Positions 27,428-50,457 are shown, numbered from the stretch's first letter. The stretch: 64,000 bases of DNA from Podarcis bocagei (GCA_964188305.1 OZ076885.1), one strand, 5' to 3'. Program-made: numbers and translations. The notes: a model not told the origin generated them from the letters alone.

Positions 27428-28387
27428 CTCTAGCTTCTATCAGCCCCAGCTAGCATGACCACTGGTCAGTGATTATGGGAGTTGTAGTCCAAAACATCTG
27501 CAGGGCACTAGGTTGGGGAAGGCTGCCTTGGGGCGTTCTCCAAATTGCCCTCCATTCTTAGTAGAAAGGCTTCGTGTTGTCCCATTATTGCCCAGAGGGC
27601 ATGGCCATCGTCCATAATACAACACAAGTATTCAGTGAAGTAAATGCAGCAAGTACTACTCTGTGCAATTAAAGTTTTGTAATTTCTAGCTCTTCATAAG
27701 AGGTAGCTGCTGAGAGCCAGATGAGGTAATCTTAACCTTTTGTGCTTATATGTTGTCATTTTATTGGGTAAATGGCTAGTTGAAATGCAGTTGTAACAAA
27801 CTGAATTATAATGGCATGTTAACAGCCAAAGGCAGCTGTGTTAGCATGTAAGCAAGAAGTTTCAAAATCCGGTTGGCCAGCAACTTTATTGGACCTATCA
27901 AAACATTGCAAATTTGTTGCAAGCTTTTGAGTTGTCCCGACGAGATGTTACATAAAGCAGGAGATGAGGGTTTTTCTTTGTTTGTTTTTAGTACAGAAAG
28001 GTTAGGCTAGATATTGTAGCATGTTTGCAGATGGATCTTGGAGGCTGGGTAAATCTCTCCTTGGTGCTACAAATACCAGGTTTTACACCTAGCATTCTAG
28101 AATAAAGAATCAATAGCTTGCAACCCAGATATGTACTTTAGTTACTGAAAGCGGGATTTCAGCTAGTCACAACATCAAGAGTTTGGGTTGAGGAAAAGAA
28201 TTAACTGGATTTGCGTTGTTTAAAAGTTCAATTTTGTGCGCACACAAAAGTAAAAAGAGTTGTTTCTGCAAGAAGCCATCTCTGTTCTCCTACCTTCCAA
28301 AAGAGCTATCATCTATACCAAGCAGTGTCTGTAAATCACAGAGAAGGTACTTTAATGCTAGCTTCTGAGTCCGGCTTGTTTGGAAGC

Positions 28388-28795
28388 TGTGAGGGTTTGA
28401 TTAGCTGCTTGTGCGTGAAAACGTGCTCCCTCAGAGTTTGTGCGCCCCCACAAACCTCCGTGTGTGACGGAGCTCCTCAGACATGTCTGCTCTAGTCACT
28501 AGTAGAGTCCGACAGTGGCTGTCTGCGGAAGCGTTTCCAACAAAGAAGTTCCTTAACGGAAACGCGTCTCCTGGACTCACGGCGTGACAGTTTCCTGCGA
28601 GGTATGGGTCTCCCTATGGGAGACTCCGATACCTCCCCACTGTTTTCGCTGGAAGCCTCCCTGAGCCCTCCCTCCTGCTCGCATTCCCTCAGAGACCCAC
28701 TCCTCCCCCTGCTGGTCCCTGCTTCAGCAGTTGAGTCTCTTTCATCCTGCCTGAGTCCCTCCACCACCTGATGCTCTGATGGCAGTTCCCTGACA
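28388..28795 (-). repeat. 3' LTR (408 bp)
   Basis: Direct repeat of 33450-33857, adjacent to the PPT. Confidence 0.97.
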
Positions 28796-31700
28796 TCCAC
28801 CTCCCCTCCAGGGCCCCCCTCACCCCCTCCCAATTCCTCCCCCCTGGGAGGTGAAGGGCTAAAACCCCGAAACGAATCTTCCTCATCTTCTGACGTCTCG
28901 AACAATTCTCTCCATCGATCGTCGTCCTGGCCAGCTGAATCCTCCTCCTCTTCAGAATCTGGGAACCCCTCCAACTCCTCTTCCTCGTCGGTGGTGGCAA
29001 AGTATTCCCTTCGGAACCTCGCTACAGGCTGAGGTTTACGTGGGAACCTCTGATGAAAAGTCTCTATTAAAACCTCGTCATTGACATCCTCTGCCCTAAC
29101 CCAGGTGTTTTCCGACTCCGGTTCCCCTTCCCACATTACCAAATACTCTACTTGATCTCCCTTCCACCTGGAATCGAGGATCTCCGCTACATGGTAGCTG
29201 TGTTCCTTCTCCTCCATTGCTGGTCCCCTAGTGACCCTCCCCTCACTGTCTCCTCTATACGGTGACAGCAACGACCTGTGAAAAACTGGGTGCAGCTTCA
29301 TGTGGTTCGGTAACCGGAGCCTGAAAGCCACTGGATTGACCTGCTGTATGACTTCAAACGGACCCAGCCTTTTGGGTCTTAATTTCTTACAACCTCCTTT
29401 GAATGGCAACCCTTGGGTTGACAGCCACACCTGGTCCCCCACCCTGATGCTTTCACCTTCCCTTCTGTTTTTGTCTGCTTGCCTCTTATATTCCTCCTTA
29501 GCCCTGTTTAAGTTGAGTTGGAGCTGGCGATGGATCGCTTCCATTTCTTCCACGAACTGTTCTGCAGCTGGAACGCTCCAGTTCTCCCCCTCCCCCCCTG
29601 GGAAGGCTCTGGGATGGCACCCGTGATTAGCCAAAAAGGGGCTCATCCCCGTGGACACGTTCTCTGCATTGTTGTAGGCAAATTCTGCCAACGCCAGCTT
29701 CTCCACCCAATCATTCTCTCTGTCATTAACATAACACCTCAAATATTGTTGGAGAACCCCATTTGCTCTTTCCGCCTGCCCGTTGGTTTCAGGATGACGG
29801 GCCGTCGAGAAATTAACCTCTACATGCAGTAAGCTCATGAGCTTCCTCCAGAACCTGGAAGTAAATTGTTTCCCTCGGTCTGAAACCACCCTCAAGGGGG
29901 CGCCATGCAACCTAAACACATTCTCTACAAACAATTTGGCGGTTTCTTCTGCTGTAACCGCATGTGAGCAGGCTATGAAGTGGGCCATTTTAGTTAACAG
30001 GTCTACTACAACCATGATGGCTGTTTTCCCTCTAGACCTTGGCAGATCAGTCATGAAATCTATTGCCACTGCTTCCCACGGTCTCTCAGGTGTGGGCAGT
30101 GGTTCTAATAAACCAGCCGGCGCCTGCCTCTCCCCCTTGGCTCTTTGGCATTGTTCACACCCTCTCACATACTCCCGCACATCTTCCCTGACCTTGGGCC
30201 ACCAAAATTCCCTGGTAACCAGCCACATGGTTTTGTGTTGCCCAAAGTGCCCTGCTGTGGGGCTATCGTGCAGCTGCTTGAGTACTTTCTCCCTCAATTC
30301 CCCTTCAGGTATATATAACGCTCCCTTATAATACAATGCCCCATTTCTCTCCTCAAAACCACCGGGTTTGTCTTCCTCCCCTCTGAGATCCCTGAGTTTC
30401 CCCTGGGCGTATGCATCCTGCACCGTACCCTCTACCAATTCCCTTTGCCCCACCAAAGTCGCCCCACACACCCAGCGGTCCTCTGGAATGATATGGGTTT
30501 CTTCGGGTGCTCCCTCCCCCTCCAAATATTCAGGCTTGCGTGAGAGAGCGTCCGCCCTAACATTCTCTGGGCCTGGCACATAACAAATCTCAAAGTTAAA
30601 TTTGGAGAACTCTTGGGCCCATCTCAACTGCCTTTGGTTGAGCACTCGCGCCGTTCTCCAGTACTCTAGATTTTTATGGTCCGTGCACACTTGCACTTTA
30701 TGTTGTGCACCAACTAGCAGATGCCTCCATCTCCGGAACGCCTCATGAATAGCAAGCAGTTCTCGGTCGTACACCGTGTAGTTCCTCTCGGATTTGTTCA
30801 GCTTCCGCGAGAAGAAGGCACACGGACGCCACTCCGACTCCTCCTTCCCCGGCTGCAGAAGAAGCACCGCCCCTATGGCTCTGTCAGATGCGTCTGTTTC
30901 AACCCTTAGCTTCTTTCGTAAATCCACATGCAGAAGTTGTTCTTCAGAGGCGAAGGCCCTTTTCAGTTCCTCAAACGCTCGCCCCGCCTCCGCCGTCCAT
31001 ACAAACTTCTTCTTACTGCTGAGACAGTCAGTGATGGGCGCCGTCAGATGGGCGAAGTTGCGGATGAACTTACGATAAAAGTTTCCAAACCCTAGGAACC
31101 TCTGCACATCCTTCTTGGTTTTGGGTGTTTTCCATTCCAGCACTGCCTGTACCTTGCCGGGATCCATGGCCAATCCCTTGTCTGACAGGCGGTACCCCAG
31201 GAATTCCACCTCCTTGGTATGGAACCGACACTTCTCCAGTTTGACCCACAGCCTGTTGGCTTGCAGTCTGCTCAACACTTCTCTGACGTCTCTCACATGT
31301 TGCTCCTCACTCTCAGAATACACCAACACATCATCTAGAAAGGCAACGCAATTCTTGTAGAGCAAAGGGCCCAGCACGTGGTTCATAAAAGATTGAAAAC
31401 ACGCGGAGCCTGCTTGTAATCCAAATGGCATAACGAGGTATTCAAACGCCCCCAAAGGGGTAAACATGGTGGTTTTCCATTCATCCCCTTTCCTTATGCG
31501 TATCAGGTTGTACGCCCCCCTTAGATCCAGCTTTGTGAAAATCTTTCCCTTCCTCACCATGGTCAAAATATCATCAATTCTGGGCATAGGGAACGCCACC
31601 GGTTCAGTCACTGCATTCAGCCGTCTAAAATCACATACAAGTCTCGGCTTGTCCGCATTTTTTTTGTCCACAAAGAACACTGGGCTCCCCCCTGCTGCTT

Positions 31701-32445
31701 TGGACTCTCTGATGAAGCCTCTCTTCAGGTTCTTGTCAATGAACCCTCGCAACTCCTGCATTTCCCTGTCTGACATGGCATACAACTTGCCCACGGGAAG
31801 CTGTGCTCCAGGGAGTAAATTGATCTGACAATCAAAGGGTCTATGAGGTGGTAGTTGGTCAGCTTCCTTCTCGCTGAACACGTCGCTGAGATCTGCATAC
31901 TGTGGTGGTACCTTCACCTTTCCCATTACTTCAGTCCCTGCTAGGGTGGCTTGGGCCCCTACTGAACCCTTCTCCCCTTTGCAGTGTTCTAGGCAATGTG
32001 CTGAACCAAAGGACACCACTCTTTGATGCCAGCCAACCAGCGGATCATGTAGAGCTAGCCAGCTCATTCCCAAAATAATGGGAGCGCCTCCCAGGGTGGC
32101 CACATTAAACGCTATCAGTTCTGTGTGCCTTGCCACCCTCATTATCATTGGGACAGTCTGCAAGCGGACTCCTCCTCCCAACAACTCCCTGCCATCAATC
32201 GTGGTCACCTGCAGGGGGTTGCTTAAAGGGATGGTCTGTATCTGGTGTTCAGCAACAAACTCCTTGCTCATAAAATTGCAGGAGCTGCCTGAGTCCAATA
32301 GCGCCTTTATTTTTAGGGGGTGCCCATTCTGCAGCTCTAGCGACACTTCAATCACTAGAGCAGGTCGAGGAGCTTCTGGCACGGGCACTTTCACTGCTCT
32401 TTGGCCTGGCTGCAGTGCCCCAATTGTGGCAACCAGGCGTTGGCT
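28492..32445 (-). CDS. pol: Pol (PR-RT-RNase H-integrase-chromodomain-acidic/basic tail), expressed as Gag-Pol by -1 frameshift
   Basis: Protease LLDSGS; RT LDLRGAY...FLDD; RNase H TDAS/TDH/ADALSR; integrase HHCC, D,D,E and GPF motifs; chromodomain ~29041-29196; frame open 32478-28492. Confidence 0.96.
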   Translation of the reverse strand, partial: SQRLVATIGALQPGQRAVKVPVPEAPRPALVIEVSLELQNGHPLKIKALLDSGSSCNFMSKEFVAEHQIQTIPLSNPLQVTTIDGRELLGGGVRLQTVPMIMRVARHTELIAFNVATLGGAPIILGMSWLALHDPLVGWHQRVVSFGSAHCLEHCKGEKGSVGAQATLAGTEVMGKVKVPPQYADLSDVFSEKEADQLPPHRPFDCQINLLPGAQLPVGKLYAMSDREMQELRGFIDKNLKRGFIRESKAAGGSPVFFVDKKNADKPRLVCDFRRLNAVTEPVAFPMPRIDDILTMVRKGKIFTKLDLRGAYNLIRIRKGDEWKTTMFTPLGAFEYLVMPFGLQAGSACFQSFMNHVLGPLLYKNCVAFLDDVLVYSESEEQHVRDVREVLSRLQANRLWVKLEKCRFHTKEVEFLGYRLSDKGLAMDPGKVQAVLEWKTPKTKKDVQRFLGFGNFYRKFIRNFAHLTAPITDCLSSKKKFVWTAEAGRAFEELKRAFASEEQLLHVDLRKKLRVETDASDRAIGAVLLLQPGKEESEWRPCAFFSRKLNKSERNYTVYDRELLAIHEAFRRWRHLLVGAQHKVQVCTDHKNLEYWRTARVLNQRQLRWAQEFSKFNFEICYVPGPENVRADALSRKPEYLEGEGAPEETHIIPEDRWVCGATLVGQRELVEGTVQDAYAQGKLRDLRGEEDKPGGFEERNGALYYKGALYIPEGELREKVLKQLHDSPTAGHFGQHKTMWLVTREFWWPKVREDVREYVRGCEQCQRAKGERQAPAGLLEPLPTPERPWEAVAIDFMTDLPRSRGKTAIMVVVDLLTKMAHFIACSHAVTAEETAKLFVENVFRLHGAPLRVVSDRGKQFTSRFWRKLMSLLHVEVNFSTARHPETNGQAERANGVLQQYLRCYVNDRENDWVEKLALAEFAYNNAENVSTGMSPFLANHGCHPRAFPGGEGENWSVPAAEQFVEEMEAIHRQLQLNLNRAKEEYKRQADKNRREGESIRVGDQVWLSTQGLPFKGGCKKLRPKRLGPFEVIQQVNPVAFRLRLPNHMKLHPVFHRSLLSPYRGDSEGRVTRGPAMEEKEHSYHVAEILDSRWKGDQVEYLVMWEGEPESENTWVRAEDVNDEVLIETFHQRFPRKPQPVARFRREYFATTDEEEELEGFPDSEEEEDSAGQDDDRWRELFETSEDEEDSFRGFSPSPPRGEELGGGEGGPGGEVDVRELPSEHQVVEGLRQDERDSTAEAGTSRGRSGSLRECEQEGGLREASSENSGEVSESPIGRPIPRRKLSRRESRRRVSVKELLCWKRFRRQPLSDSTSD
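28796..28809 (-). promoter_or_regulatory. Polypurine tract GGAGGGGAGGTGGA
   Basis: Purine-rich run directly 5' of the 3' LTR TG. Confidence 0.85.
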
Positions 32446-32451
32446 TTTACC
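32383..32451 (-). promoter_or_regulatory. -1 ribosomal frameshift signal: G_GUA_AAA, 6-nt spacer, H-type pseudoknot
   Basis: S1 GCCUGGUUGC/GCAGCCAGGC (10 bp, one GU); S2 GGGCACU/AGUGCCC (7 bp); pol is in the -1 frame. Confidence 0.8.
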
Positions 32452-33404
32452 TGCTCCGCTCCCCCTTCTTCTCCCCCCTCAACAGCTCCCACCATCCCTT
32501 GCCATTCCTTCCTCTGGGGGCAGACTCTGGCAAAGTGGCCTGGCTGTTGGCAGAGATAGCATTTCCGGGGGCCCTTTCCCTCCTTCTTAGCTCCCTCGCT
32601 GGTTTTTGAAAATGCGCGCGCGCGCGCTGTTCCGATTTCCATCGGCTCTGCCGGCGGGAAAGCTGGCTCAGGAATGTCTGGAATGCGGAACTCCTTCCAA
32701 CGTTCCCCTCTCCCTTCCCGCCTCTCCAAGGCTCTTGCCTCCTGCCGCGCTCCTATGGTCAGCGCAGATTTGGTCAGCTGATCCATAGACTCCGCCCTGG
32801 GGCTCCGTGCCAGCTCGTCTTTCACCCCCGAAGAAAGACCTTCTTCAAATAGCATTTGAACGGGTGCCGCCGATAAATCCCAACTCAGTCTGTGAATCAG
32901 CATGGTAAACTCAGTCCAATATTCACGGACAGATCGACTCCCCTGCTTACAAGCCATTAGCTGCCTGCGCACCACCCCTTCCTCAATATCGCTGGAAAAC
33001 ATGATATCCATTGCACGAAAGAACTTCATTGTGTCCTTTAGTATGTCATTGTGCGTTGCCATTAGGGGTCGCACCCAGTCTCTAGCCCCTTTCTCAAGAT
33101 GCCCAATTACAAAAGCAACTCGCGATTCCTCATCAGGGAACTCATCGAACTGCACATTAAGGGCATATTGCATCTCTGTCCTAAAAGCATGGTAGTCCTT
33201 GGGGTCCCCCCCAAATTTCTGCACCAATCCTGGTACCTTTCTGGGGAATTGAGTGGCTCTCCCCTTCTTGTCTGCATCCTGAGCCCTTCTCTCCTCCAGC
33301 CTCGCCGTCTGCAGGGCCAGTTGAACCTCCAACGCTCGGTATCTATCTTCCAAGCTTGGACCAGCTCCAGCCCCTGCTCCTCCGGTTCCGGTTGGTTCGC
33401 TCAT
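32391..33404 (-). CDS. gag: Gag (retrotransposon capsid-like domain plus CCHC zinc knuckle CYLCQQPGHFARVC)
   Basis: First in-frame ATG at 33404 (A at -3). The ORF track extends to a non-ATG start at 33515 inside the LTR. MHR-like KQGSRSVREYWTEF. Confidence 0.92.
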   Translation of the reverse strand: MSEPTGTGGAGAGAGPSLEDRYRALEVQLALQTARLEERRAQDADKKGRATQFPRKVPGLVQKFGGDPKDYHAFRTEMQYALNVQFDEFPDEESRVAFVIGHLEKGARDWVRPLMATHNDILKDTMKFFRAMDIMFSSDIEEGVVRRQLMACKQGSRSVREYWTEFTMLIHRLSWDLSAAPVQMLFEEGLSSGVKDELARSPRAESMDQLTKSALTIGARQEARALERREGRGERWKEFRIPDIPEPAFPPAEPMEIGTARARAFSKTSEGAKKEGKGPRKCYLCQQPGHFARVCPQRKEWQGMVGAVEGGEEGGAEQVKANAWLPQLGHCSQAKEQ

Positions 33405-33436
33405 GATGCCTTCTCTTGCACAGGCAGCGTACAAAG

Positions 33437-33447
33437 ACTGTCGGACT
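33437..33447 (-). promoter_or_regulatory. Self-priming primer-binding site AGTCCGACAGT
   Basis: Starts 2 nt inside the 5' LTR end, has no TGG, and is the exact complement of LTR ACTGTCGGACT (33578-33568). Confidence 0.88.
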
Positions 33448-33449
33448 GC

Positions 33450-33857
33450 TGTGAGGGTTTGATTAGCTGCTTGTGCGTGAAAACGTGCTCCCTCAGAGTT
33501 TGTGCGCCCCCACAAACCTCCGTGTGTGACGGAGCTCCTCAGACATGTCTGCTCTAGTCACTAGTAGAGTCCGACAGTGGCTGTCTGCGGAAGCGTTTCC
33601 AACAAAGAAGTTCCTTAACGGAAACGCGTCTCCTGGACTCACGGCGTGACAGTTTCCTGCGAGGTATGGGTCTCCCTATGGGAGACTCCGATACCTCCCC
33701 ACTGTTTTCGCTGGAAGCCTCCCTGAGCCCTCCCTCCTGCTCGCATTCCCTCAGAGACCCACTCCTCCCCCTGCTGGTCCCTGCTTCAGCAGTTGAGTCT
33801 CTTTCATCCTGCCTGAGTCCCTCCACCACCTGATGCTCTGATGGCAGTTCCCTGACA
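33450..33857 (-). repeat. 5' LTR (408 bp)
   Basis: TGTCAGGG...CCCTCACA in element sense; no differences from the other LTR found by eye. Confidence 0.97.
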
Positions 33858-36800
33858 GAAGCCATTAGCCATACTCCCTTATTCAGACCAAAGGAGAGAT
33901 TATCTGGTTTGTTTCACCATTCAAGTGAAGGGAGAGGCAAAGGAGATGCATATCAACTGTATATATGCTGGCTTATTTGACCAGGATTTTATCATGCACA
34001 CGCAGCCACAGATGTCATAGAGTGGATGCTACCCTGTTTTAAACTATTAGAGGACACTCAGTCAATCAGGTACATCTCCCTTTTATGCCATTAACCTATG
34101 ACTAAAAGCTGCTTCTTAGATTAGAATGCCTAGGCATCCTGGGAAATTGTTGAATAAATCCCAAAAATAAATGGGTGGATATATGGTGTATACCAGTTTC
34201 CCTGAACCTGGTGCCCTCTCGCAGGGTGCCGTCTTGAACTATAACTCCCATCGGTGATGCTAGAAGTTGTTGGGGGAAGGCTGCTTTACAGTGTTGCATT
34301 TAGAATATTAAGGAAGCCACAGCCAATTCAAGCTGTCATACATGCATGTATGCAGTGGTGTACAGATGCAAATAGAAGCTTTTAACATGATGTCGTACAT
34401 GGTGTGTATGTGCACATGTACATTATCTAGTGCTAAAGCAGCTCTAATAATTTCTTTGTGTAATTAAAATATTGTTCCTTAAGGAAAAACTAGTGTACGC
34501 GATTATCTTAAGCTGTTGCTCAGTTCTTTACAGAAACATGCCAGACTGAGGATTTAAGAGTACAAATTTAGGAGTACAGGTGTCATTTCAATTTTCAGGG
34601 GTTTCACAAATATTTTGAGTTTTGTGGGGCATCTTAGTTCTGGCTAGCAGCAGAAAACCGTGAGAGCTCTTCATAATTCATAGTACAGACCTTGGACATG
34701 TAGTTTCTTCATCCATACTGTAGTAATTTCCTGGGATTTCCCAGTGATTTAAAGCCACAGTGTACAAACTTCCTCAGTGAAAGCATTTCTCATTATACTT
34801 CCCATAGGGATAAATCTGCTAGGTTAAGCCCACTTCAAGAAGGCGCCATGGCAGAAGAAAAGAGACACAGAGAGAATGAACGAATGCCTAGTGGCCCCTT
34901 TGCCAGCCTATTTTGTCTGCCCGTTACAAAGCCTGAAGGCCTATCAAGACTTTTTCTCTGTGTGGCAGCTGTCTGTTCATTTCATTTGTTTAGCAGCATC
35001 TTGAGGTTTTGATTGTCCTATATTTGCCCATGGTTCTTGAGCAGAAAAATTATTTTCTTATTATTTAAGTGGTAGTTGTGCTGCCTTCATTGTGACTTTG
35101 AAGAAAAATCATTAACTTTTTCATCCTCGTTTACGAACACTCAAGGTTTTTACTCGTGCTCCTTGTGCTAGAGAACACATTTTAGCAGCATTGGAAACTG
35201 TTGATTCATTTTCAGCTTTTGTGATTATGCATTCTGTTCTATTATCAGTACTAGGAGACTTTTAAAAGCCTCAATAAAAAAATGAGTATAATTAATCAGT
35301 GTATTTCCCAATGTGATTAGTAGTATATCAGAAGAACAGCCTGTCAGATAGACTTGGGTCTTGTACTCAAAAAGATGTATCAGATTTATTTTCAGATTTT
35401 TCTTTTAGTTTATTTTTCCCCAGCCCCCTCCCTTTCTTCCTTGGTTCCTTCCTTTCCTCCCTGTCAATTTGCCTGCCATATCCAGCATATTCGTATCCGT
35501 TGTTAAATGCCCCATCTGTAAAATAGCTATTTCGAGAAATGTCAGTTAATGTCTCCTTGCATATTAACATTCACTATGGAAAAGATAATATATTATCTTA
35601 ACCAGTATAGTGTTTGCCCTCTCACTTCCCTGGTCTACCCACTATAGACAGATCTGAAATGAATACGGAATCCTTCTTCAATCCTTAGATCTTTGCTTTT
35701 CCTGGGGGATGAAAATATTCTAGTGCCGCTTGTTCTGTGTTACCCATCTTCCTAGCCTAATTAAAGACCATCTGGAGGATGCATGCTTGTAAGGGTAAGG
35801 GCAGTGACAGCAACCTCCTGATCATTACACCTCTCCAGGTTCCCAGCTGTTAAATGAACAGTTGTAACATGCAGGCAAAATGGATAATAGGTGGATAGAA
35901 CTTGCTGCAGAATGTGAACAGTGTGTGGCATTGGTGGACAGTAGAGAAGAAATGGTATTTGTTTGTATTCAGTAGAATAGAGCTTCTTCCTCAAACATTT
36001 GGGATTGCAGGCTCATCTTCTCCAGTTTACTAATGATATACACACACAAGCTCATCAGGCATCCTACCTCTCCAAATTTGGGGGAACGGAGCTGCTGATT
36101 TATACCAAATAGCTTTTTATATATAGTGGGAAAGGGTGTTGGTACTCACCATGAAGTTATTACAGTAAGTGTTTCACTTTTAACTGAGGTGGGGTGGAGG
36201 TGCTGGTACTATGTGCCATGGAGTAGTCCTAGAAAAAAGTTATGCAAATTGTTAATAGCCATGTAACAAGTGGCAACCGGCCACAAAATGTTACAGTGTG
36301 CTGTGGTTTTACTCAGAGTTCCAGCCAATCCATTCCATTGCTCCTTCCACTGGCCTGGTTTTCCTCAGTTAGTATCCATCAGTTAATATTCTGTCCCCAC
36401 TGAGAGTGCTCTGCACTCAGTGGCTTGTTTTGTCACAAGGGTTCTCCATTTAGGGATGTTTTTAGGGGGTGAAGTAGATAGCTTTACACTACATTAAAAC
36501 CCTTGATTTCTCCATATGGGTGTCTCCCATTTCCATTCCTAAAGGCAGTTGGGTTTTGGTCCGTCCCCCCCAGCATCTGCAAACATCCCGGTTACCTCAA
36601 GTCTGCATGGGTGGTGCTGCTTTGCCTACACCTTCAGAAGCATAGGCAGATAAATTAGAGATGCAGGGAATAAAGATGATCTTTTCAACCTATTGAATTT
36701 GAATCATACTCTCCAAAGTTTGTCCTGCTGTACACAGTGCTTGTTCCTTGCTTAACATATGTTTGCAAATAAAGAGTCAATCTCTTAAATCTGCAAATAA

Positions 36801-47024: not shown

Positions 47025-48193
47025 GTTTAGCCAAAGGAGAGAAGACCAAGGGGGCAGGATAGCACTCATATAGATGTCTAAGGAGTAGCCATGTAGCTCT
47101 TGGTTTCCTGCATCAGGCTGGGGTTAGACAAAATGGTCTATAAGACCAGGTACTTCTACGCAACTTTCTTTCAGGTGACTTTTTGCAGACCACTCACACT
47201 CCCTTCTTTCATCTCTTATGCTAAACAGCCTTTCCACACAGCTTTCCAAGTAGTTTGAGCTGGACTCGCTGTTGTAGACTAAGTACACATTCCTGCAAAC
47301 TTTGCTGCCACCTGCCGTTGGTCTTTGGAAGTCTAGTGCTGTTTGAAGAATATGCTTATTCAAGAATGCCACCCTGCTCAGCTACTCTATGCAAGACATT
47401 TTAAGCCATTTGTGTAGTAATCATTGTGTGCCACAAGTTCAAGCAAAGTATTTGCTAATTCCCCAAAGACATATGCCAGGATCTCATGGTGGTTCTGTTA
47501 CTCTGTGATGGGCCTAGAATGTCTTGAGGTCTGTGAATTGTGGTTGTGGATGAAGTGGACTTCAGTCAAAGCTTAGGACTTGGTGATATGTGTTACTAAG
47601 AAAGTGGGTGAAAATACATTCTCCCAATAATGGAAAGACAGTGTGCCTTGCTCCACCTTTTTTTCACTGCACTTTTGGCTGTAAAGAAATCTAAAAATAT
47701 GATGTTCCCTTCTTCCTTTCCCTCCCTTGCCCACTACAAAAATATTGGAAATAGAGTGCTTTATAAAACTTGTTTTTAATTTAGAGAAGGTTTTATTTTA
47801 GGAAAAGGGTTTCATCATTTTCACTTTCGCCCGTTATAGAAAGGTTATCAGGTTTGCAGTATATTTTCATGGCTCTTTCAGGAGAGTGGCATGTTGCAAA
47901 AGCAAGCACCTTTTGCAGTCATCAGATATAGGGCAGGAAGCTGCCTTACTTTGTGAGTTAGATGTCCAGGCTGACCCTCCTGTTATGTCACAGGCAGCCT
48001 CCCCAAACCACCTGTACTTGTGTCAATAATAAATACAAAAGAATCGATCCATGCAACATTGCATAAAAGAATACAAGTAAGCTAACGTAATTTTACAGTT
48101 TAAAACTAATCAGGAAAGTGAATAATGTCTAACATTAAATGTAGCAGAGAAAATGAATTAAAAACTAATGTTATGAGTGTTTCTATTTTACAG

Positions 48194-48340
48194 CTCTTTG
48201 TTGGTCTTGGTTTTCCATATGAGGGACCTGCCCCTCTAGAGGCTATTGCAAATGGATGTGCATTTCTGAATCCAAAATTTAATCCACCCAAAAGCAGCAA
48301 AAACACAGATTTCTTCAAAGGCAAGCCAACACTCCGAGAG
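48194..48340 (+). CDS. MGAT5: MGAT5 coding exon 12 (LFVGLGFPYEGPAPLEAIANG...KPTLRE)
   Basis: acag|CTC...GAG|gtaagc, 147 bp. Confidence 0.97.
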
Positions 48341-50457
48341 GTAAGCAATCAACATCCATATTCACAATTTTCTATTGAGTGTACTGCTGGTTGGACATGT
48401 CAACAGTAGCTTTTGTAGCACATCCTTTTTTAAATTTTCAAGCATCACCAAAGTATGGGATTTCATTGCTATTAACATAGCAAACTCTTGGTCTGGGATT
48501 GTTTCCTTCTGAGCCTATATCCTGCAATTACTTTTAGACATTTGTATCTAGAATAGTATCAGTGCTCAATTCTTTCAATTGGTTCAGTTTACACAGAAAA
48601 TCCCCATTGCTAAAAACAAAAATCAATGTATGAAAATCTTAAGAGTGTAATTCTAAGCAGGCCACAGGTGTTGTTTTTTTGTGTGAGGTGGTTTGCACAT
48701 TTATTTAGCTTTATGTACACAAAATGCAAGGAAGTTAAACTCTGTCCAATTTCCAGCAAGGGGGAAAAACAAAAAACAAACCACTTGAATTATTTTGCTA
48801 GACTTTAGGGGCAAGGTCCTTCTCTGTGTTGGGTGATGGAGGTCTACAGTGAACTTTTACTTGCAGCCACACATTTCAAGGTTCCTGATCAGGACTCTAC
48901 TCAAATTCAAACACAGAGATAGATAGGGGGTGAGGTGGATGTGGATATTATGCCAGGGCTTGTATGTACACCCTTCTCCCTTCCCATAGATAATGGAGTT
49001 CACATGTTCACTCCCGAGCATACTTCTTGTTACTTGGAAATAACAGCTTGTTCCTCAATATTTATAATGTTTTACAGTCATCACCACCTGAATCGTGTAT
49101 GCTGACAGCACATAGCCTATTAAAAGAGTATAAATAAAATTCTATGATATTTGTATTTAAATCAATATAAAGAATATTTGTTTGCCTGTTTTAGTTCCTG
49201 GAAAGGGCAGTCAGAGGGGGGCATTAACTTAATAAAAGGGATAAACATAGCATGGGGGGAATCAATTCTTTTCATAAACTGTTTGAGTGGCAATGGCCTC
49301 TTTCTTGTAAAAGAAACATTTGCTTTACAAGGTGCTTTCACTCTGTACAGGCAGCAAATATAAGCTGATAAGGATTTGTCCTCAAAATATGTCTCGACAA
49401 CAAGAATTGGCTTTGTAAATATGGCATTCAGAAAGTAAAGCAAGGGAGATTAGGATTGAAGGCTCCTCATTTATCTACACGTGTTAGCTGCCTTTTAGCC
49501 TTCACTGGGCAGGAAGCAAGGTCTTGCTTGCCAGCCTTTAGCTAACATTAAGAGTGGAGTATTTTGGGCATAATGCCCAGCACTATAACTCTGTAGCATT
49601 AATTCTGAAGGCTTTTAGAAGAATGAGGCTATCTAGAAGTACAGGAGGTGACTCGTGGACTACAGACTCATGGGCTACCAAGGGGCTGGGACATGTGCAT
49701 GTCAGTGCTTTACATGACCTCATATGCATCTCTGCCAAATGCATAATATCAGGCAAGGAAGTGGCTGCAGGAGAAAGCCAATTCAGGTGGGAACAGTTCC
49801 TTAAGAAGTAAACAGCTGCCTATAATATTTTGAAGCAAGGTAAAAGGGGGTTATGGAAAGAGTGGGTGCAGAATGTTTTGGAACACCATGAAGGTAAAAT
49901 ATGAAAAAAGAGATGGCTTATATAGCATGTGCTCTGAATTTGTTTTTTTAAGCTGTATTAAGTTTTTCAAAACGTTAAGTAAACAAGCTACAAAAAGTGT
50001 GTCATTGCAGATGGCAACTCACAAATTAAGTAATCTTATCGAGTCTTCCAGCTTTGACACAAATGGAAATGACTGAGCATACAATTCTCATATAAATACT
50101 AATTAGCTTGGCAAGAGATACTAGAGAGGTCAGAATTTAGTATCAGAATGTTAGGATACTTTATTGCAAGATACACTAAACTGTCTGCTTCCCTTTTTCA
50201 AGGTGCATTGCACTGTCCCTGACTCTTATATAATTACTTGCCCCACATTTCAATGATTAGGTTCTATAGAAATCTTGATAGATAATTCCTTTTTGGTGAA
50301 TATGATGAGGTGAGCAAAGCTTTGAAAACAAAGGAATAAAGAGCCCCCTAAATGGCTGGAGTGTTATGTTATCTACACATTTTGCATCTTATTGAAATTT
50401 GCCTACTGAAATGAATATGATTCCCGGAAAGATGACATGTGATTGTTTTTCTTTCAG

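Follow-up and report, generated by a model that had tools for sequence, protein, structure and literature searches.

Target-site choice determines whether a retroelement is harmful or tolerated, and the locus described here raises the question of how one such element might choose its sites: why does the integrase of a lizard chromovirus carry, beyond its chromodomain, two short acidic motifs that look like those of host ligands of the chromatin reader LEDGF? The window, i.e., the whole stretch of DNA that was analysed, comprises 64,000 nucleotides from Podarcis bocagei (GCA_964188305.1 OZ076885.1), and the element is an intact long terminal repeat (LTR) retrotransposon on the minus strand at 28388-33857 (5470 bp), a complete Ty3/gypsy chromovirus.

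Two tandem motifs follow the chromodomain in the integrase tail

Translation of 28800-29400 and of the full open reading frame placed motif 1, RFRREYFATTDEEEELEGF, at Pol aa 1126-1144 (29019-28963, minus strand) and motif 2, DRWRELFETSEDEEDSFRGF, at aa 1159-1178 (28920-28861, minus strand), exactly as an initial annotation of this DNA had given them. Both lie between the Pfam chromodomain and a stretch that ends in the polypurine tract (PPT), directly after the chromodomain where that annotation had put them. The features of this region are as follows.

29047-29196, minus strand: chromodomain (Pfam PF00385, aa 1067-1116) whose aromatic cage is degenerate, reading Y-W-E where [YF]-W-[YF] would be canonical (see the cage tabulation below)
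28963-29019, minus strand: motif 1, consisting of the helix RFRREYF (28999-29019), the linker ATTDEEEE (28975-28998) and LEGF (28963-28974)
28921-28962, minus strand: spacer (aa 1145-1158), acidic and variable, that separates the two motifs
28861-28920, minus strand: motif 2, consisting of the helix DRWRELF, the linker ETSEDEEDS and FRGF
28796-28860, minus strand: purine-rich stretch whose end is the PPT, immediately before the 3' LTR; translated as SPSPPRGEELGGGEGGPGGEVD

Motif 2 thus ends in a full FxGF (FRGF) and motif 1 in LxGF (LEGF), a distinction already drawn in the initial annotation and seen in our translation. The linkers are 8 (ATTDEEEE) and 9 (ETSEDEEDS) residues long, and each contains two CK2-type consensus sites of the form S/T-x-x-D/E (in TTDEE and TSEDE, respectively), the TT or TS being invariant within the family. 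We then asked how often a pattern of this kind (F, 8-9 residues including at least 5 D/E/S/T, then [FLM]xGF) arises by chance: of 200,000 composition-preserving shuffles of the 69-aa tail, 0.25% contained it one or more times and 0.007% two or more times. Among 334 collected proteins (265,042 residues), the pattern was confined to the lizard clade.

The motifs resemble those of LEDGF/HRP2 ligands

Motifs that interact with TFIIS N-terminal domains (TNDs), the family to which the integrase-binding domain (IBD) of LEDGF belongs, have three parts. A short helix, anchored by F/V/L/I, is obligate. It is followed by a linker of 8-16 residues, acidic and enriched in D/E/G/S/T, in which phosphorylation by CK2 raises affinity. 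The third part, FxGF, is optional for TND-interacting motifs (TIMs) generally, but every known LEDGF/HRP2 ligand has it and depends on it (PMC9987994). Several TND ligands carry two or three such motifs (PMC9987994), and the passage of PMC10854676 that cites Sharma 2018 gives the upstream helix a conserved Phe. Binding of FxGF to the LEDGF domain is conserved in animals, including Drosophila, as work on JIL-1 and JASPer shows.

All of these elements were found in motif 2: an amphipathic helix that ends in Phe, an acidic linker, CK2-type sites and FxGF. At the level of sequence, every feature of a LEDGF/HRP2-type TIM is present in the tail, with LxGF standing for FxGF in motif 1, and the residues that do not vary (see below) would be those occupying both IBD pockets, except for the L or M of motif 1 in this element's family. 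The known cellular ligands of LEDGF and HRP2 include JPO2/CDCA7L, KMT2A/MLL1, IWS1, PogZ, CDC7-ASK and MED1, as well as Drosophila JIL-1 with JASPer. Cellular IBD ligands and the lizard motifs have in common a disordered context, a short helix anchored by Phe, an acidic Ser/Thr linker, CK2-type sites, FxGF and, in many of the cellular cases, tandem copies. Unlike the cellular ligands, the lizard motifs sit on a retrotransposon integrase rather than on a host transcription factor, their binding is predicted, and motif 1 of the lizard family has L/M for the first Phe.

The motifs are retained throughout a deep clade of related elements

The initial annotation had proposed, as its first test, that the motifs be conserved against a variable tail. 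We compared about 20 Podarcis gene models and Logan contigs as the family set, and obtained diverged lineages through an exhaustive HMMER search of 1.84 billion representatives and a profile search. Within the family both motifs are retained and the spacer varies, with an 8-residue indel; motif 2 reads F[RWQ]GF, while motif 1 has L or, in one subfamily (MEGF), M where FxGF would begin. In sister lineages the motif-1 position holds a full FxGF (FVGF, FEGF, FIGF, FKGF or F[QRH]GF) and the motif-2 position FRGF or FLGF. The lineages read as follows.

Lineage P0183: RFWEEQF-ATTDEEEED-FVGF and RWEAVF-ESTDDDSSS-FRGF
Lineage P0336: FFEQVF-GPTDDEED-FKGF and WGNVF-EDTEDEDEI-FLGF
Lineage P0184: FVGF
Lineage P0187: FEGF
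Lineages P0224 and P0337: LQEIF-EETDSEEEE-FIGF
Lineage P0203: second position only, QWKTVF-ESDENEDTD-FLGF
Lineage B (P0006, P0007, P0012, P0241, P0353): EYFDDWLF-TPTLSAST-F[QRH]GF, exactly at the motif-1 position

When 14 motif instances from the diverged lineages were aligned, only three columns were invariant, namely the Phe of the helix and, in FxGF, the G and the final F, whereas the x takes nine residues (R, W, Q, V, E, I, L, H, K). These invariant residues match the core residues of the chromodomain in conservation (alignment of SH3 domain, chromodomain and tail), and at least one full FxGF is kept in every lineage, including lineage B with its roughly 48% identity in the integrase C-terminal region and chromodomain. 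In a maximum-likelihood tree of SH3 domain plus chromodomain, every motif-bearer falls to the same side of a 100/98 branch, with deep internal branches there, which points to a single gain of the motif followed by its retention throughout the clade. With invariant Phe, G and F, a low ratio of non-synonymous to synonymous substitution rates (dN/dS) in the motifs and a spacer that bears indels, the expected conservation against a variable tail was borne out. As a separate observation, the Pol tails of two Anolis carolinensis elements (P0009, P0010) contain, past the chromodomain, AHDIVMPDEEENLGF, in which LGF comes after an acidic run but the place of the first Phe in FxGF is not taken by a hydrophobic residue; the motif may have degenerated or be a different one.

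Selection acts on the peptide

We estimated dN/dS between the window copy and the sister subfamily L003 by the Nei-Gojobori method, at a dS of about 1.

Motif 1: dN/dS 0.02 (6 synonymous and 1 non-synonymous difference in 19 codons)
Motif 2: dN/dS 0.09
Spacer: dN/dS 0.22, plus the 8-residue indel
Integrase: dN/dS 0.04
Chromodomain: dN/dS 0.07
PPT-coded stretch (28796-28860): dN/dS 0.80, with a low dS of 0.34

The motifs carry fewer non-synonymous differences than the spacer (Fisher p = 3e-4). Between lineages, the codons of the invariant F, G and F vary synonymously (TTT/TTC, GGG/GGA/GGT) as do those of the linkers, and lineage B maintains its TPTLSAST linker despite many synonymous changes. 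Because codons at the invariant residues and in the linkers vary in this way, the comparison indicates that selection acts on the peptide and not on an RNA or DNA element. The stretch just downstream of the motifs is different: its Gly/Glu run, GGGEGGPGGE, is the translated purine-rich stretch that ends in the PPT, and its low dS together with the dN/dS of 0.80 indicates that constraint there is on the nucleotides.

It is also seen that the Pol frame continues for about 100 codons into the 3' LTR (28492-28795, minus strand), with a dN/dS of 0.22 against L003 at a dS of 0.71. The end encoded there is conserved in lineages A and C as VK[EQ]LLCWKRF[RK].[QR]PLS[DE]S.SD followed by the stop; LLCWKR recurs in L002, and lineage B has a related end, ILSWC...SD..S. 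Given this ratio and the conserved end, the LTR-encoded extension looks translated and selected, and, being basic, it may serve as a nuclear localisation signal or contact DNA or nucleosomes.

The tail is predicted to be disordered apart from the two motif helices

An AlphaFold2 model of Pol aa 979-1195 (SH3 domain, chromodomain and tail), built from a 19-sequence alignment, folded the SH3 domain and chromodomain confidently (block-mean pLDDT, the per-residue model confidence, ~78-89). From model residue 148 on, pLDDT fell below 50 except at residues 182-186, and the only secondary structure in the tail consisted of two short helices, aa 1124-1133 and 1158-1165, exactly on RFRREYF of motif 1 and DRWRELF of motif 2. 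The disordered setting in which TIMs occur is therefore reproduced in the model. No docking of the tail onto the element's own SH3 domain or chromodomain was seen in it, leaving a reading in which the tail acts by intramolecular docking unsupported.

Elements that carry the motif have a degenerate chromodomain cage

We tabulated the aromatic cage of the chromodomain in 121 Pol sequences, i.e., 120 relatives and the window copy. A full cage, [YFW]-W-[YF], without the motif was present in 86 of the 121. Every motif-bearer lacks the third cage aromatic, having Glu, Ala or Thr there, and most lack the first too; sister lineages read [SNH]-W-E, and in lineage B (N-R-T) the Trp is also gone and the Pfam chromodomain model no longer recognises the domain. 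The window copy, with Y-W-E, does not have the canonical three-residue cage. Outside the clade, the tails (95 measured) are mostly 5-30 residues long. The element shares its Pol architecture with canonical chromoviruses and is placed among them by sequence, but, compared with them, its clade has lost the third cage residue and gained a tail of 60-100+ residues that bears the motifs before the PPT. This degeneration of the cage in the motif-bearing clade would fit a change of targeting mode.

A candidate tether to transcribed gene bodies

We propose that the integrase tail docks, via its motifs, on the TND (the IBD) of LEDGF (PSIP1) or HRP2 (HDGFL2), readers of histone H3 trimethylated at lysine 36 (H3K36me3); that docking may be bivalent and may be enhanced by CK2 phosphorylation; that the pre-integration complex would thereby be tethered to transcribed gene bodies; and that this tether would replace or supplement the ancestral targeting by the chromodomain. 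The parts of this proposal differ in strength. That the tail motifs are a functional short linear motif we regard as highly probable, and that they bind some TND as likely. That the partner is LEDGF/HRP2 and that the motif acts in targeting is a closer call, on which we lean slightly in favour. The fullest version, in which the lacertid clade has abandoned methyl-lysine reading by the chromodomain and now relies on tandem mimics of the IBD motif to tether integration through LEDGF/HRP2 to H3K36me3-marked gene bodies, we put forward tentatively, as a possibility that may well turn out otherwise.

Several points weigh against the proposed tether. In this element's own family the first FxGF position of motif 1 is L or M rather than F, the linkers of 8-9 residues lie at the short end of the 8-16 range, and the TPTLSAST linker of lineage B is Ser/Thr-rich, not acidic. 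The correlation between cage loss and motif represents a single evolutionary event. Among carriers assigned to a species (Podarcis muralis, P. lilfordi), the motif is confined to Podarcis, and no FxGF was found in the chromoviruses of Anolis, Rhineura, Vipera and Crotalus that have long acidic tails. With regard to insertion sites, the window copy is apparently intronic (in MGAT5), but the position of a single copy is weak evidence; for three further copies no host gene is called in the surrounding 10 kb, a sample too small and too biased to weigh; and at a further locus, L004, three lineage-B copies (F-TPTLSAST-FxGF) lie within 25 kb on both strands. That locus is in Podarcis muralis (OZ076972.1, ~29.88-29.91 Mb of a 30.39-Mb record, near the record end), and its arrangement suggests clustering or nesting in a repeat-rich region. 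Searches of PDB chains with the profile of 14 instances and with the 61-aa tail returned no IBD-binding or TND-interacting peptide, the sole match being a chance one to a yeast hydroxylase; since HMMER is unsuited to motifs so short, these blank searches are not evidence against the proposal. The initial annotation had read the motifs as mimicry that tethers integration to transcription-elongation chromatin and had taken the intronic position as fitting; motif conservation and the sequence features of TND/IBD ligands gave that interpretation partial support, whereas the intron adds little to it.

Three other explanations were weighed. The motifs could be genuine TIMs whose partner is another TND protein (IWS1, TFIIS, Elongin A, PNUTS or MED26), which would tie the integrase to the elongating Pol II machinery. 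A helix with an acidic linker is indeed the obligate core of all TIMs and is read by many TNDs, and tandem TIMs are known in proteins that bridge several TNDs (PMC9987994); however, neither the G nor the final F of FxGF varies in the clade, and it is for the known LEDGF/HRP2 ligands that FxGF is essential, being optional elsewhere, so that we consider another TND partner unlikely. Alternatively, a conserved acidic-aromatic motif might have an unrelated role, such as chaperone-type histone binding, nuclear import, particle assembly, a CK2-regulated switch or intramolecular regulation of the integrase, and resemble IBD ligands by convergence of form. Selection and conservation indicate function but not a partner, and many basic surfaces are bound by acidic sequences that hold aromatic anchors; the combination of all three parts, correctly spaced and invariant at exactly the predicted IBD-pocket positions, is nonetheless specific, and the AlphaFold2 model leaves the low-confidence tail (pLDDT <50) undocked on the element's own domains. 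We judge an unrelated role to be rather improbable.

Finally, the motifs might have no function and have arisen by chance where the sequence beside the PPT is purine-rich, acidic and of low complexity. The region is GA-rich and near the PPT, and acidic tails are common in squamate chromoviruses. Against this, the motifs have a dN/dS of 0.02-0.09 at a dS of about 1, codons at the invariant residues vary synonymously, the motif is kept in every sublineage of a deep clade, two copies arise in shuffles with a probability of 7e-5, and the part that is truly constrained by the PPT behaves otherwise, with its low dS and a dN/dS of 0.8. Taken with the conservation of the motif residues, these results effectively refute a low-complexity origin, to which we assign a negligible likelihood.

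Relation to known integrase tethers

The tether proposed for the lizard element can be set beside three known systems. HIV-1 integrase would share with it the partner, the IBD of an H3K36me3 reader, and the outcome, integration into transcribed gene bodies. HIV-1 integrase contacts the IBD by the folded dimer interface of its catalytic core and by its N-terminal domain, with no linear motif (PMC4176367); unlike this folded interface, the lizard element would copy the host ligands' own motif. LEDGF also binds PogZ, which is itself derived from a transposase (PMC4176367). Precedents for tethers mediated by the integrase tail are those of murine leukaemia virus (MLV), whose integrase binds the extraterminal (ET) domain of BET proteins, and of Ty5, whose integrase binds Sir4p (PMC4176367). 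As in the lizard element, the MLV motif is a short one in a disordered tail past the last folded integrase domain; in MLV, catalysis does not need this motif, which binds a reader of host chromatin. MLV differs in its motif (W-x-Phi...PL-b-Phi-b-Phi-x-R), its partner, the ET domain, and its targets, promoters and enhancers. Ty5 is likewise an LTR retrotransposon in which a very short C-terminal integrase peptide decides the target via a host chromatin protein, Sir4p, but it belongs to the Ty1/copia lineage, its motif is a 6-mer and its target is heterochromatin. What the integrase-tail tethers have in common, a linear motif in a disordered tail beyond the last folded integrase domain, was found in the lizard element.

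A corpus of 8.1 million open-access papers, together with bioRxiv, yielded nothing linking a retrotransposon integrase to a TND- or IBD-interacting motif, and searches on chromoviruses with LEDGF, and on LEDGF mimicry by retrotransposon integrases or H3K36me3, returned general reviews only; this agrees with the initial annotation, which knew of no such case in Ty3/gypsy elements. The kind of device, an integrase tail motif that gains access to a chromatin reader by imitating a host ligand, is already known, and further integrase-tail tethers have been predicted in a review of the field (PMC4176367). The combination of this motif, the predicted partner and the element class appears to be new.

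To our knowledge, few tethering systems are known (Ty1, Ty3, Ty5, Tf1, MLV-BET and HIV-LEDGF). If the proposed docking on LEDGF/HRP2 is correct, the lizard clade would provide the first LEDGF-type tether outside the lentiviruses, achieved by motif mimicry and not by a folded interface, and a retrotransposon and lentiviruses would have converged on the same H3K36me3 reader through different interfaces. In the fullest version of the proposal, an LTR element would have moved its niche, in nature, out of heterochromatin and into transcribed genes. The tether would also explain why this clade has long acidic integrase tails and degenerate chromodomains, and would offer a clean, peptide-sized system for how a short motif re-aims integration, along with a natural comparison, within one genome, of canonical-cage and FxGF-bearing chromoviruses.

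The element and its genomic setting

The element that carries the motifs has all the parts of a chromovirus: LTRs with a target-site duplication, gag, and a pol in which protease (PR), reverse transcriptase (RT), RNase H and integrase (IN) follow in this order with a C-terminal chromodomain. Its remaining features, and the one host exon named here, are the following.

28388-33857, minus strand: complete Ty3/gypsy chromovirus (LTR alignment, flanks, gag and pol domains)
28383-28387 and 33858-33862: 5-bp target-site duplication GCTTC bracketing the element
33450-33857, minus strand: 5' LTR, 408 bp, TG...CA, 100% identical to the 3' LTR
28388-28795, minus strand: 3' LTR, 408 bp, TG...CA, into which the Pol frame extends for ~300 nt from its start
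32391-33515, minus strand: gag, with a retrotransposon capsid-like domain and a CCHC zinc knuckle (domain search)
28492-32394, minus strand: pol open reading frame, 1300 aa, PR-RT-RNaseH-IN (zinc finger, core, SH3)-chromodomain-tail (translation, domain search); the integrase SH3 domain is Tf2-type
~48185-48349, plus strand: exon of MGAT5, with a match to the human enzyme over its residues 395-446 (PDB 5ZIB; E = 4e-29)

With identical LTRs, a target-site duplication and complete gag and pol domains, this is a very young Ty3/gypsy chromovirus, and, as the element is intact, its family is probably still active in Podarcis. The nearest database relatives are Podarcis muralis gene models named 'Gypsy retrotransposon integrase-like'. 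Since the MGAT5 exon comes from the middle of the gene, we infer that the element lies in an upstream intron of MGAT5, in antisense orientation.

Near-identical 31-mers of the element (28388-33857) occur in sequencing runs of at least 8 organisms from 10 studies, and contigs of four runs tile the whole of it; the RNA label of these runs is a guess, on which we base no claim of transcription. The family is spread over several taxa and may be transcribed, subject to that unsure label. Two database gene models, P0004 and P0034, fuse portions of such a Pol with host sequence; the host gene is a vomeronasal type-2 receptor in the Podarcis muralis model and a transglutaminase in the Pelodytes one, and these fusions are probably annotation chimeras that arose from intronic insertions.

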